Shown: positions 29,480 to 35,675 of the stretch, in pieces | Position numbering within the stretch: position 1 is the stretch's first letter | Layout: the number at the start of each line of letters is the position of its first letter | Assembly: GCA_011109175.1 (NCBI GenBank) | Contig: RDEW01000053.1 | Coordinates: 1 to 64,000, forward strand | DNA: 64,000 nucleotides | Direction of reading: 5' to 3' | From: Dicyema japonicum | Lineage: Eukaryota > Animalia > Dicyemida | The notes under the pieces: model-generated | Seen by the model: only the letters and a program-made list of their open reading frames with translations | What the model was told of the DNA's origin: nothing | Database searches by the model: none | Translations under genes and position numbers: made by a program

Positions 29480-29885
29480 ATTGTTCCCATAAAAGGAGGA
29501 AAGATCTAACATCGATCGAAGAATACCCCATTAAAACTAAGCTTGCCATATAAAAGCAAGAAGGATCTAATATTGGTCCAAGACTACTCGTAGAGTGCAG
29601 GAAGATCTATTATTGGTCCAAGTATTTCCCGTAAAACTAGAAAGGTCTTATATTGGTTGAAGAATATCTCACAAATGGCAAAAAATCCATTATTGCTTGA
29701 CACACATCCCATAAAGGTCAGAAAGGTATCATTGGTCAAAATATTTCAAATAAATGCCAGAAAGCTCTATTACTCGATAGATACAAAAAACCTAACATTG
29801 GTCAAAGAATATCCACTAAAGAGCAAAAGATCTATTATTACCGACAGTTATCCCATAAAGACAAAAAAATCTAATATTGATCGTC
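29480..29885. repeat. Degenerate minisatellite, unit of about 39-40 bp, roughly ten copies
   Basis: Recurring atcccataaa..aagatctaatattggtcaa-like unit; no single frame stays open. Confidence 0.7.
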
Positions 29886-30025
29886 GGATTTATTAAACCC
29901 GCCAAATCTGGGGGTCGATAATCAAATGATTGTTTGAGTCTGTAGATTAAATATTTTTATTTGTTTTTTGTAGATTATAACCAAAAGTAGAATCAATACT
30001 TTAAACCCCAAATTATATTTTAATG

Positions 30026-32400
30026 TTAAAGTTGAACGTAAATCTTGTTAATTTCACTTGATTTTGAGATTTTTTTCGAAAGGCAGCATCTATCATTTTT
30101 GATATAAGCGTAATTCCACTCCATTTTATTATTGCACCACGAATGAAACGAACAGCTTAACAAAAACGTGTGATTCTTGTGACACTGAGGGTCGTATGGA
30201 TTCCCAACCGATGCCTTTTTCCTTGCTATAATCACCTGAATCGATTCCGTCATTGGTTTTCCGCATATTAGTCTTGCCTTTGGTAAAATGTAAGCTAAAC
30301 CATCGTTTCCTCCGAATTTGAGTACACAACGCAGGAGGTGGCTGAGGGTTTAACCCCATAACAGCCAACAGTATTCGAACAAGAACATCCGATTATGACA
30401 TGTGATTCGGGACACTCAGCCTTTGACAATCTCCCTGTATTTCCGTTGATTAGCAAAATTTCCGTAAAGTACTTCGAGACCAAGTCTATCGACTTGATAG
30501 AGGATTGTCCATCCACTGTTCTGCAAAAATGATTGATTAGCCAACCCACTAGCATTCAGGTAGTTCGAGTTTATTAGAGAAGTGACTGTCGTCCTCAGTT
30601 GGAACGACTGAGTTTTCGAGTCGCTGCAAATGGCTTTCGCCTATAAATCTGACTGAATCCGACCTGAATGAAGCTGTTTCCATTCTTTGCGTATACACAG
30701 CATTTGCCATCATAAATCCACGAAATATCCGAGGTAGATTTTGTGGAAGAACAGTCGGAAATTATTTTTGGAGTAGGACAGCCCACGCACGTGGATGTTT
30801 GCTTTTCTGCTTCTTTGGCGAAAATAACATCGCTGAATTTTTCAGAGGCGAATGAGGCTTCGAATATAAGGTTATCTTACTCTTGCAGATTGCTACGATT
30901 GTTGGGTCCTTGCCGTAGACTTGGCAGTAATTTTCGTTTAATTCAACGTTCACTAGTCTATTCGGTTTATGAATGAATCTACTTGGAGGGTATGCAGTCC
31001 ACTAAAGTTTCATTGTCTTTGCAGGAGACTTTGTGAACCCCAATACCAATTAACTTGTGGGATGTGTAGGTGTACGTCGAAAATTGAGAATTCTCACAAT
31101 AAGCGACAACCTGAATCACCAGAAAGCTCAAACCTGCTTGTTTTCGTCATTCGAGATGCAGGTGTTGAATTGCAGCTTAGCAAAACTATCAAATCCATAG
31201 CAGTGAGCGAGCTTTGTTCCCACGGGACAGGAGGCTGGGATCGAGGAGTCTGACACCACGAGTTTGGCTTTGTCAACTACAAATAATTCAAATCACCATG
31301 CCAATCGCAATCGCATAGATCTCACAGCCATCACAGGAAGATTTCGGGACACAACTTTTGTCCAAGTTGTTCTTGACTATTCCAAATGTCTGAGCAGAAT
31401 TTGGCCTATTTACATAATTTGGGGGGTACTTGATCTTTATTAAGCATCCCGTTACATATTCTGAGTAAATATTATCAGGTCCCGGCTTTCTGATGACTGT
31501 TTTATATTCGTTATCCTTCACACAGCCAATTATGGCCGGACAAATTTAAAATGAGCTAACCTTGACTTCTTTGTCGTTATTAATGTAAGTGACAATGCAC
31601 TGGTTGTCCCTTATTTCAGTGGAAGAGCATTTCTCGGGGACCGCACAATCACAGGACTTGATTGTATAGTTTTTCTGGCAGGTTCCTATCGAAATGATCG
31701 TTCCGTCGTCTTTTGTGATGGTGTATCCATTCACGTGGTCGTCAATTTGTTCTTTCTAATAAACCAGACAGTTACTGAGACACGTGATTTCTCCAGTGAT
31801 GAAGACATCATTTTGATTACCCTTTTTGTTCTTGAAGTAGCATTTATTATACTTCATCATGATTACGTGACTTCCTACCGGAAGCCCGCTAAAGCTGAAT
31901 ATTCACGACTCACGGATTGTACATTCTGCAGTCACTCATCACAGTTCCAGAGGGACAGGCCATTTTCCCGCATTTGAGTATAACCTTGGTGTACACTTTG
32001 GCCTCATATTTTTCTCGTGGAACACATTTTGCCATAGTCTTTCATTCCTCACATAAAATACCCTAAATTTGTATTCCCGGTTTGCTCCGAATGAGTAGCA
32101 CATTCTTCCCTTTACAAACGTTCCGTATGAATATCCATCGTAGTAACATTTAGAGACTACCATATTCGGAGGGCATCGAATGGTTGAAACGAAGACACTT
32201 CCTTCAAATGCTCCCCCATGAATTTTTATTTCTCCGTCAACTAAACTATTGACGATTTAATACATTCTAAAGCAAAACGGAATAGCAAAAGTAGCACAAT
32301 CATTGCTTACTTCAAAAATGCCAGGATTATATATCACAGAGGTTACAGATGGCGTGGAATAAATTTGTCCACAGACTGTCGTTTTTTATCGATAAATCAA
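30026..32400 (-). CDS. Cysteine-rich repeat protein, about 9 PCSK9-CHRD/resistin-like modules; 5' end unresolved
   Basis: Joining exons over about 13 introns of 18-28 nt gives a continuous frame with a repeated C-P-x-G-x4-5-C...C...A-x-C module (e.g. CPESHVIIGCSC, CPSGTVMSDC, CPVGTKLAHC, AKAIC, IVAIC). Confidence 0.75.
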
Positions 32401-32429
32401 ATTAGCTTCCATTATGTCGTTACTTTTAG

Positions 32430-33130
32430 CAGACAGTCAGCCCATGGTTAGAATCACCCTTTCTGCAAATGGGTTTGCTAGATCATATCAGGAACGTAGG
32501 AAACCCATGCCATTTCTCAGCGCCGTCTCTTCAGAAAGGAGACTGGTGATGGACGAGCAGTTGGCTTGCATGAGAGGTTATACCCTGAATCCTAGAAGTA
32601 GGACAGGAAAATCTCCAGTCCGAACAAGCATATTCAATTGTCGGCACAATAACTTGAAGGTAGACTTTACTAATAAAATCTGCAGGTGGGAAGGGGGTCT
32701 TCTTATGGTAAATTGAGAACGTTCCATTTTCAAAGCCCCTTGGTTAACACCTCTTTCGCGTGACTGGAAAACGTCATTAAAGAGTCGAAAGTTACTCCAA
32801 AAATCTTATAGATTCGCGTAGAATGAATAGGGATGTCTCTAAGGAATAGCTCGAGTCCACTCGTTAATCTCCAGTCACTAGTGAACAAGGTGAACTGAGA
32901 CTTGAATGCGGATCAAGACAACATATTTTGGGATAACCAGTCACAAACCTGGTTGAGGTGTGACTGAACCACAGCCAAGGAGAGATCTATCTCTTGTGGG
33001 GATAATGAGGTCATCCACGTAAGATGAAAACATAATGTCCTGATCTTTGGCAGTAGGTAACTCGTGTAGAAATAAGTTAAACAGGAACGATGATAAAGGG
33101 GAACCTTGGTGGACCCAATTTGGTAGTTGC
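32430..33130 (-). mobile_element. Jockey/I-like LINE RT 3' fragment
   Basis: QGSPLSSFLFN, YVDDL, IFGVTFD on the minus strand. Confidence 0.75.
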
Positions 33131-33384
33131 CTAAATTAGTTTATCGATCCGGACTCTTCCACGTCGGTTATCATGTCGAAGCAGTCTGTGATGTGATGGA
33201 TTGGGAGACGGATCCCAATTGAGTCGTGTTGAAGAACGGCCTGATCTGAAGAAGTCTGCGAACAACGATGACTTGAGCAGACTCGCGTTTGGAAAGTATC
33301 CATTCATGTTGATTTCCAAACACTGGCTTGGTCGTTACGCCATTTAACCTTTTGCCATCATCCTTGTCACGTTTGACTTATCCT

Positions 33385-34400
33385 AATGCGAATGCACGAC
33401 ACCCTGATAGCTGGGTCGAGTGTGTCTGCCAGAACCCACCTAGGCACTATCAGACTTTTTTGTCTGCTAAGTATGGTGTTGATGATGGTGGGCTAGTAAA
33501 TGTGAAGGCGTTGATCCAATTTCAATATAATAATTTGATGGAAAAGATCAACTAAAAAGCCTTCATAAGGTCCTCTTCAGAGCATTGGACAACCCACATG
33601 TCGACCTTAAGTCATATGGCTAAATTACGGTGACTACCCATATCGATCGGAGGTGATGTACACGTATATGCAAGACCGCAATATTTTTTGGGGTCGATCA
33701 ACAATACATGTCCCCATTGTAAGTCAAGGAGCATGTCGGTTGATCATTTAGCCACTCGTGCGGATCCATGCTCTGCCACGACTATGTGGAGGCATAACGA
33801 GGTAGTAAGGAGTCTTCATCTTTAACTATGCAATAAGTATGGTATTCGCCACACCAGAAAGTTGCGGACTCTTAAGGTGCAATCTGTAGTAGAGAACACC
33901 AGGGTCCAAATTAAGGTAGACAGTGTTATCCGTACCTCGATGCAAGTCAAGCACAATAAACGGTGTTGCACGATGAGGAGTCTGGCCAAGTCCTTATCAT
34001 AGAGGTTGGCATTACGTCTCAAGACCGTTTGCAGATTGTGGAGGTGGAGAAAAAAAGGAAGTATGACTTGCTTGCAAACGAGATGGGGCAGATGCTTGGT
34101 TGCAAGGTCCTCGTTATTCCAATAGTAATGACGTTGGAAGGAATTGCAACAATGTACCACAAGGGTTATGTGAAGCAGTTGGGGGTAGATAGGAAGCTCC
34201 AGGCCTATCTACTGTCCACTGTATTAAAGCGGACTTTAGATAGTTTGACACTGGAGTGTAGGAGGTAGAGCCCGGAGATGCCATATGGGCAGAGGGTTCA
34301 ATTGGACAAGGCGTTCTCGGAGTTGTTTCAGCAACCAGAATCGAACCTGCCTGAGGAGGCTGGCGAACAGGCAGGCGAGGAAGCTTGTTAATCATTAAAT
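33385..34400 (+). mobile_element. R4/Dong-like retrotransposon, 5'-truncated, with CCHC and RLE domain
   Basis: CPHCKSRSMSVDHLA, RHNEVVR, IIEVGIT...EKKRKYD; AT-rich tail. Confidence 0.85.
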
Positions 34401-34660: not shown

Positions 34661-35675
34661 CAGTGTTTCTCAAACTGGGGTCCGCGGAACAATCTTTAGT
34701 AATTTATATTAGTCTACTTTTATATTATATTTTTTTAAATTATTTTGAATTAAATTTAAAAAAAAGTGCTTAATTTATCCTTGTAGGAATGTCCTGTTCA
34801 AATAATTCAATGAATAAAAATACATTTTCTGATACTCGTTTATTGACTTTATTGGAATTTCTGGTGGATATATTTGAATCTGTGAATTTTGTTAATTTAC
34901 AACTGCAAGAAAGAGATACCACAGTCCTCCATTGCCATGAAAAAATGACTGGTTTCAAAATGAAACTAGAACTGTAGAATTCAAAATTAAATAGTTACAA
35001 CGTTGCGCCATTTCCACATCTAAATATATTTATTGATGAAAATGAACTTTGCATTACAGCATTGATGTGATGAAACAACACATATTATTTACTAATAGAG
35101 AAATTTCTAGGTATTTTTTCGTTATTTATAAATTTTTAGATATTTTCCTGATAATTCTGAATTTGATAAGTACGATCGTTTTCTCAGCAACCCATTTGCA
35201 ATTTCAGTTAAGGATCTCCCTTCTGAAAACCGTATAATTCAGGAACAATTTATCGATTTGCTTAATGATGGATATGCAAAACACGTTTTCAACGAAGTTT
35301 CCCAAAGCGATTTTTGGATTCAAATGGCTGATTCCTATTCAGAATTGGCAAGGATGGCGCTTACAGTGCTCATTCCATTTGCAACTACATATGAGAGTGA
35401 GACAGTGTTTTCAGCACTACTTACCGTCAAATCAAAATTCCGCGATAGATTGGATGTGTCAAATGACATGAGGGTTGCATTGTCTAAAACACAACCCGAC
35501 TTAGAAAAACTGGTGGTGGCCAAACAAGTGCATCCATCTCATTAATTATCATTCTTTAATTTTGCACTAATTTTTGTTTTTGTTAAAATGATAATTCACT
35601 AATTTAACGAAACACCGCAAGCAATTAAAAAAAAAAGGACCGCGACTTCTTTTTTTTAAAGTTTGAGAACCACTT
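34661..35675 (+). mobile_element. Charlie/Buster-like hAT element, internally deleted
   Basis: TIRs cagtgtttctcaaact / agtttgagaaccact; 6/8 TSD (ttgaagat vs tggtagat); FW...YSELARMALTVLIPFATTYESETVFS...DMRVALS...QVHPSH. Confidence 0.9.

Follow-up and report, generated by a model that had tools for sequence, protein, structure and literature searches.

The window analysed here, a 64,000-nucleotide stretch of the dicyemid Dicyema japonicum (contig RDEW01000053.1, positions 1–64,000), carries on its minus strand a gene whose spliced product is a long chain of cysteine-rich modules. We consider it likely that this gene, hereafter the array gene, codes for a secreted protein of ~660 amino acids (aa) consisting of a signal peptide followed only by modules homologous to those of resistin and of the C-terminal domain of PCSK9 (CHRD), and that it belongs to a family of at least 13 loci. 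Both resistin and the PCSK9 tail matter in medicine, and their fold is usually seen as a vertebrate curiosity. Together with the relatives described below, from protists and a hemichordate, the dicyemid gene shows the module to be an old and widespread extracellular building block, one that can apparently form a whole secreted protein without a protease.

Cysteine modules and their homology

Seven modules (1, 2, 3, 5, 6, 7 and 8) are canonical. Each has the core C-P-x-[GN]-x5-C, that is C-x8-C, followed after 13–20 residues by a third core cysteine and after a further 12–19 residues by a strand ending in A-x-C. The modules recur with a period of ~60–76 aa and are joined by linkers of ~24–26 aa. 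Module 9, the last, has C-x9-C and a CC pair. Module 4 (31536–31302) is divergent, with four cysteines and the ending C-E-I-Y-A-I-A-I; it is conserved in four paralogs and found no match in Pfam or the ESM-Atlas. The first-pass annotation of this DNA had estimated about nine modules, a figure that stands for the seven canonical modules and the C-x9-C end module but not for module 4, which could not be assigned to the CHRD/resistin fold. Between modules 7 and 8 lies a cysteine-free spacer of 59 aa (within 30301–30640, minus strand), about twice the usual linker length, which could be either a hidden degenerate module or a flexible hinge.

A non-circular test of the repeat was obtained with a hidden Markov model (HMM) built from 41 units taken from the paralogs and none from the window. 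Run against all 2,299 open reading frames (ORFs) of at least 18 aa in the window, this paralog-only HMM returned seven significant units (E-values 7e-10 to 9e-3), all on the minus strand between 30298 and 32256, and nothing else in the 64 kb fell below E 0.2. The module repeat is far beyond chance. In the array gene and in paralogs L020–L023, phase-0 introns recur directly ahead of the final A-x-C strand of modules 1, 3, 5, 7 and 8, which is consistent with growth of the array by duplication of units the size of an exon. At the DNA level, Tandem Repeats Finder (TRF) detected nothing between 28500 and 33500, which we ascribe to the protein repeat being too old.

The case for homology is carried by profile A1, an alignment of 34 modules. 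Searched against 177,635 PDB sequences, A1 matched 17 PCSK9 sequences (E 1.1e-5 to 6e-4) and nothing else significantly. The matches fell on CHRD module M3 (residues 621–663), with 7anq_A the best at E 1.1e-5 and weaker echoes on M1 and M2, and resistin (1rfx) appeared at E 1.3. An exhaustive search of 1.84 billion representative proteins gave 52 proteins at E ≤ 1e-3. The top matches (P0001, P0002, P0003, P0005, P0006, P0008, P0014 and others) each contain two to five stretches recognised by Pfam PCSK9_C3 or PCSK9_C1 (E 1e-12 to 1e-34), which coincide with the A1 matches, and none of these proteins matches Peptidase_S8 in Pfam. Alignment of A1 with P0005 by hhalign reached 94% probability.

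The gene model itself was derived from the genomic letters and from comparison of paralogs, while the Pfam, PDB and fold runs on the array gene used single exons or open frames; testing exon by exon truncates the modules and lowers the scores. Pfam Resistin matched module 8 (E 9e-4) at 20.2 bits, below its cut-off of 25 bits, and Resistin (PF06954) found no match over the whole genome. Over the same 67.5 Mb, PCSK9_C3 (PF18463) gave two matches only, both in paralogs of the array gene and both under the gathering threshold (23.4 and 20.1 bits; cut-off 26.7). Ten open frames of the array gene, searched at E ≤ 10, yielded no PCSK9_C, Sushi, HYR or EGF match in Pfam. The last exon, compared with the PDB by phmmer, returned only chance-level immunoglobulin-domain matches; one module by itself is too divergent, and a profile was needed.

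Only modules 9 and 4 are contained in a single exon. For the AlphaFold2 (AF2) model of module 9, Foldseek ranked resistin and PCSK9 first, with 1rgx/1rfx at the top, and the model superposes on CHRD M3; weak taken alone, this agrees with the sequence evidence. Exon 11, which holds module 8 minus its intron-separated last strand, gave a model with a predicted local distance difference test score (pLDDT) of 68 and Foldseek results at noise level, with resistin and PCSK9 at ranks 27 and 30. The AF2 models were all-beta, with no helical segment in the exons examined.

Two of the A1 library matches were a Sushi protein and a HYR_4C protein, and we took them to be motif-level false positives involving only repeated C-P-x-G edge matches. 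They bear on the alternative that the modules adopt another small four-cysteine extracellular fold, for example Sushi/CCP, and that the C-P-x-G...C likeness is convergent. We regard this as highly improbable. The Sushi/HYR matches cover only profile positions 16–31, many times over, whereas the best library matches align over the whole unit and are PCSK9_C-positive in Pfam. No array-gene exon matches Sushi, HYR or EGF even at E 10; the PDB contains many CCP structures, yet A1 matches only PCSK9 there; and PCSK9_C3, searched genome-wide, finds the array-gene family only.

These searches support homology of the array modules with those of the PCSK9 CHRD and resistin, as a four-cysteine variant lying below Pfam thresholds. 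The first-pass annotation had likened the modules to both and had seen no subtilase domain, and both statements were borne out: no array-gene frame matches Peptidase_S8 in Pfam, and module 1 follows directly on the signal-like exon described below. It had also suggested a HMMER comparison with Pfam, which delivered the Resistin match on module 8 only at sub-threshold level and no PCSK9_C match on the gene frames, and a Foldseek comparison, which ranked resistin and PCSK9 first for the module-9 model. The array protein is certainly not a PCSK9, as it has no protease, and not a resistin, as it has no coiled coil and is not a single head.

Gene structure and the GT–CG intron

On both strands, an ORF scan of 30026–32400 finds short open frames only, as had been noted in the first pass. 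Read in three frames, the minus strand has cysteine-rich frames following one another, with a change of phase every 80–250 nt that very short introns explain. Splicing by eye and by script gives a gene running from 32303 to 30026 in 13 exons, with 12 introns of 23–34 nt (10 GT-AG, one GC-AG and one GT-CG). The coding sequence of 1983 nt comprises 660 codons and a stop, the terminal TAA being the only one, while the same stretch without splicing contains 38 stops in frame. The product of 660 aa contains 44 cysteines and 10 histidines. The frame is kept through the 12 introns, whose positions and phases are common to the paralogs. The start codon is the ATG at 32303, with an in-frame stop two codons before it. 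The array placed by the first-pass annotation at 30026–32400 is therefore real and correctly located, on the minus strand, with the correction that coding starts at 32303 and not at 32400. The features of the gene, in the direction of transcription, are as follows.

32264–32303, minus: exon 1, ATG and hydrophobic signal-like peptide, 13 codons plus one base; a phase-1 intron follows.
32062–32240, minus: exon 2, linker and module 1 core (C-x8-C ... C); paralog-only HMM E 1e-9, 43% identity to the C212 paralog.
31914–32038, minus: exon 3, module 1 last strand (A-x-C), linker and start of module 2 (C-x8-C); paralog-only HMM E 1e-6.
31776–31888, minus: exon 4, remainder of module 2; frame continuous over 25-nt and 24-nt GT-AG introns.
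31561–31751, minus: exon 5a, linker and module 3 core with extra resistin-like C-x-C-x5-C cysteines; paralog-only HMM E 7e-10.
31537–31560, minus: intron-like 24-nt GT...CG segment with an in-frame TAA at 31546–31548; four paralogs have a GT-AG intron at this site.
31302–31536, minus: exon 5b, module 3 last strand (A-I-I-G-C) and divergent module 4; conserved in four paralogs.
31277–31301, minus: GC-AG intron, 25 nt; GT-AG introns of three paralogs share its position and phase 1.
31134–31276, minus: exon 6, linker and module 5 core; paralog-only HMM E 1e-6.
30983–31110, minus: exon 7, module 5 last strand, linker and start of module 6; paralog-only HMM E 3e-3.
30881–30957, minus: exon 8, remainder of module 6; from the splicing model.
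30664–30857, minus: exon 9, linker and module 7 core; paralog-only HMM E 9e-3, family HMM E 8e-14.
30550–30640, minus: exon 10, module 7 last strand and first part of the 59-aa cysteine-free spacer; from the splicing model.
30301–30515, minus: exon 11, spacer and module 8 core, the most resistin-like module; Pfam Resistin E 9e-4, paralog-only HMM E 5e-9.
30026–30277, minus: last exon (12/13), module 8 last strand, module 9 (C-x9-C, CC) and stop TAA (30026–30028); from the splicing model.
29956–29961, minus: AATAAA hexamer, candidate polyadenylation signal by motif only, 65 nt past the stop.

The published D. japonicum assembly comprises 67.5 Mb in 377 scaffolds, with a mean intron of 38 bp (PMC6736024), and a second study gives myxozoans and D. 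japonicum as the only animals with introns reported below 30 bp (PMC13644364). Host or contaminant origin of the array gene was rejected, its 23–25-nt introns being of the dicyemid type.

Exon 1 (32303–32264) codes for 13 hydrophobic residues and ends in a phase-1 donor. At all eight loci examined, an ATG-initiated hydrophobic exon lies at the same offset before module 1 and in the same donor context. Judged by its hydrophobicity and its conservation in the paralogs, exon 1 is signal-like. The C-terminus of the protein is not hydrophobic. An alternative first exon (32385–32260) was rejected for want of an in-phase acceptor. Two statements of the first-pass annotation need revision here. It had seen no signal peptide, where this conserved exon provides a candidate, and it had the 5′ end abutting a relic of a long interspersed nuclear element (LINE). 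A high-copy interspersed repeat begins only at ~33379 (33379–33820 onward), ~1.08 kb upstream of the ATG, with 774 first-look candidates genome-wide at ~87% identity, and the interval 32320–33378 between it and the array gene is single-copy. The proposal of a candidate secreted protein held; the signal-like exon is followed by nothing but extracellular-type disulfide modules.

The segment 31560–31537, between the core and the last strand of module 3, starts with GT and ends with CG. At the same position and phase, four paralogs have a GT-AG intron of 21–24 nt. Retention of the segment would place the TAA at 31546–31548 in frame, and an alternative in-frame 45-nt GT-AG intron (31560–31516) would delete the last strand of module 3. 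Four possibilities can be envisaged: the segment is spliced despite its odd end; the CG reflects an assembly or haplotype difference; the AG at 31516 is used; or the copy was inactivated only recently. There is nothing unusual in the GC donor of the 31301–31277 intron, whose position and phase recur in three paralogs; GC-AG introns form a regular minor class.

The last of these possibilities would make the array gene a recently disabled pseudogene of a functional dicyemid family, having lost its AG acceptor at 31560–31537, so that the message stops at the TAA after three modules or a cryptic acceptor costs a structural strand. The difference between GT-AG in four paralogs and GT-CG here at the identical position, the TAA inside the retained segment and the GC donor of a second intron all fit such a history. 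We nevertheless hold it to be unlikely because the rest of the gene is intact: 660 codons run without another stop or frameshift, the other 11 introns keep their positions and phases, no framework cysteine is lost, and the signal exon and the stop are conserved. Moreover, splice-site motifs are described as reduced in D. japonicum (PMC13644364), and the assembly, with 1.24% heterozygosity and PacBio-filled gaps (PMC6736024), leaves room for a single-base difference to be allelic or an error. A split into two genes at the TAA was rejected, because the downstream half would have neither a start nor a signal and the paralogs are continuous there.

Two further elements lie in the neighbourhood. 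Just 3′ of the array gene, 29480–29880 holds a degenerate array of ~40-nt units (~10 copies, 60–79% alike), found in a repeat search by its 40-nt spacings and missed by TRF at default settings. On the plus strand, an ORF at 35258–35545 contains a hAT C-terminal dimerisation domain (Pfam Dimer_Tnp_hAT, E 2.7e-8) and is probably a DNA-transposon remnant.

Paralogous family and possible function

Searched against the genome, A1 gave 48 module matches at at least 13 loci, which answers the paralogue count suggested in the first pass; single-exon searches recovered weak paralogs. By contig the loci are C327 (the array gene), C57, C212, C55, C79 (two), C323, C201, C101 (three), C330, C312 and C279. 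They fall into two subfamilies, one of long genes like the array gene and one of shorter genes with five or six units. The longest array seen in the family belongs to the C57 paralog (L019, C57:28500–37500, minus strand, ~6470–2640), with at least 12 modules over ~3.8 kb, and this gene keeps a PCSK9-like A-I-A-R-C signature after module 1. Each unit of the array gene scores highest against its same-position counterpart in other paralogs (55–126) and much lower against the other units of its own gene (19–48), which indicates that the multi-module architecture is older than the gene duplications. Three genes of the short subfamily (L026, C101:342000–349000; L027, C101:375000–382000; L030, C312:2192000–2197874) have near-identical module sequences, and one of the three is at a contig end; segmental duplication in the recent past or redundancy of the assembly would explain them. 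Several introns in paralogs L020–L023 are multiples of three without stops and so add seven or eight extra residues in ORF scans.

On the explanation that we favour, the N-terminal signal peptide would direct the ~660-aa product out of the cell. The remainder would consist only of tandem, small, disulfide-stapled beta-sandwich modules (eight recognisable, module 4 divergent), with neither a protease nor a coiled coil nor a membrane anchor. On the PCSK9 pattern, the four core cysteines of each module probably pair C2–C5 and C3–C4, the C1–C6 pair being missing. The family would have arisen by whole-gene duplication of an ancestor that was already multi-module. Outside the cell the protein may work as a multivalent scaffold for protein binding or adhesion, whether at the surface that the parasite turns to the host kidney epithelium or within the matrix of the parasite itself, and it would act by binding partners and not by catalysis, as do the CHRD and resistin. 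From this analogy we infer the function of a secreted multivalent binder or adhesin.

Several points weigh against this explanation. None of the exons scores as high as the gathering threshold of a Pfam model. The modules have four core cysteines and not six, their C3–C4 spacing is mostly shorter than in PCSK9, and module 4 stands outside the assigned fold. The intron ending in CG, with a stop on retention, means that the copy may be defective. The argument for secretion is the hydrophobic N-terminus, and the function is argued by inference throughout. The protein library contains no dicyemid protein of the family; in a collection of 15 billion proteins, no match fell below E 1e-30.

The same protein could also have another task within the dicyemid body, as part of an internal matrix or of cell–cell adhesion, instead of being directed at the octopus host. 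Relatives in free-living protists and a hemichordate join the module to PAN, C-type lectin, TSP1, fn2, EGF and somatomedin B domains, typical of matrix and adhesion mosaics. Against this, the expansion to at least 13 loci in a parasite genome of ~5,000 genes, together with strong divergence of the paralogs, is a frequent pattern at host interfaces, albeit only a suggestive one. An internal role is a possibility worth keeping, although we do not favour it over the secreted binder proposed above.

Dicyema has shed most of its genes yet keeps at least 13 loci of this family, which makes the family a prime candidate for extracellular or host-facing biology. To our knowledge, almost nothing is known of this biology in dicyemids at the molecular level. 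The family may have gone unrecognised in the published annotation, because that annotation predates the Pfam PCSK9_C models and the matches are only sub-threshold. Structural work could draw on the modules as a set of naturally occurring variants of the fold with four cysteines.

Comparison with known systems

Resistin is a single-head protein of ~90–110 aa that trimerises through an N-terminal coiled coil. Modules 3 and 8 of the array protein resemble the head of resistin/RELM (PF06954) in adding C-x-C-x5-C after C3, and the likeness extends to the sub-threshold Pfam match of module 8 and to 1rgx/1rfx as top Foldseek results for the module-9 model. The array protein differs in having no coiled coil, its heads being strung instead in one chain of 660 aa.

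The CHRD of PCSK9 comprises modules M1–M3, covered in Pfam by PCSK9_C1 (PF18459), PCSK9_C2 and PCSK9_C3 (PF18463). Its module motif is C1-x17-19-C2-x8-9-C3-x18-25-C4-x11-23-C5C6, with disulfides 1–6, 2–5 and 3–4, and the three modules together imitate the trimer of resistin; CAP1 is a binding partner of resistin and of the CHRD, which also binds MHC-I (PMC9113161). Eight of the nine Dicyema modules have C2-x8/9-C3 (C-x-x-G-x-x-L-x-x-C), followed by C4 and a last strand A-x-C. In both proteins the modules stand in tandem, and the Dicyema C4–C5 spacing of 12–19 is within the CHRD range. The non-catalytic protein binding of the CHRD (PMC9113161) is a role that the Dicyema protein may share. The array protein, for its part, lacks a prodomain and a subtilase and has nine modules against three; C1 and C6 are absent from most modules by hand count, so that there is no C1–C6 pair; its C3–C4 spacing is 13–21, mostly 13–17, against 18–25; and it is not histidine-rich (10 His in 660 aa) and lies below the Pfam thresholds.

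The closest counterparts in architecture are uncharacterised, protease-free, extracellular proteins of marine eukaryotes with several PCSK9_C modules. P0001/P0053 (an MMETSP protist transcript, 626 aa) and P0005 (543 aa) have a signal peptide, six modules in the order A-B-C-A-B-C and no other recognisable domain, together with the signature ...A-I-A-R-C-C and a C-terminal hydrophobic anchor. The first-pass annotation knew of no stand-alone long array; these six-module proteins, found in protist transcriptomes, are stand-alone arrays too. Many other relatives, from dinoflagellates, a foraminiferan and the hemichordate Saccoglossus kowalevskii (XP_006818615.2), have exactly three consecutive modules combined with PAN, C-type lectin, PA14, TSP1/fn2, EGF or somatomedin B domains. 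Our literature searches found no experimental study of these multi-PCSK9_C relatives, no paper on the module family, and nothing relevant on cysteine-rich proteins of dicyemids or on arrays of resistin/CHRD modules in invertebrates.

The relatives carry their modules in triplets, which raises the idea that the nine Dicyema modules could form three CHRD-like pseudo-trimers in a row, so that a single chain would imitate a resistin trimer three times over, and that the family might be the main secreted toolkit with which dicyemids hold on to, or signal to, the octopus renal epithelium. We regard this as rather doubtful. Were it true, it would be the first case in which a surface or secretome family expanded in a parasite is built from the resistin/CHRD fold alone, and would help to trace the origin of resistin and of the PCSK9 tail before the vertebrates.

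Setting that idea aside, the array protein shares with P0001 and P0005 the signal peptide, here a putative one, the tandem modules and the missing protease. P0001 and P0005 keep the six-cysteine pattern, clear triplets and the hydrophobic anchor, whereas the Dicyema protein has nine modules with no obvious period of three, four core cysteines, no anchor and many paralogs. Dicyema stands out by the length of the arrays (nine modules here, at least 12 in the C57 paralog), the reduced set of cysteines, the absence of any partner domain or anchor, and the expansion to at least 13 loci in a genome of ~5,000 genes.

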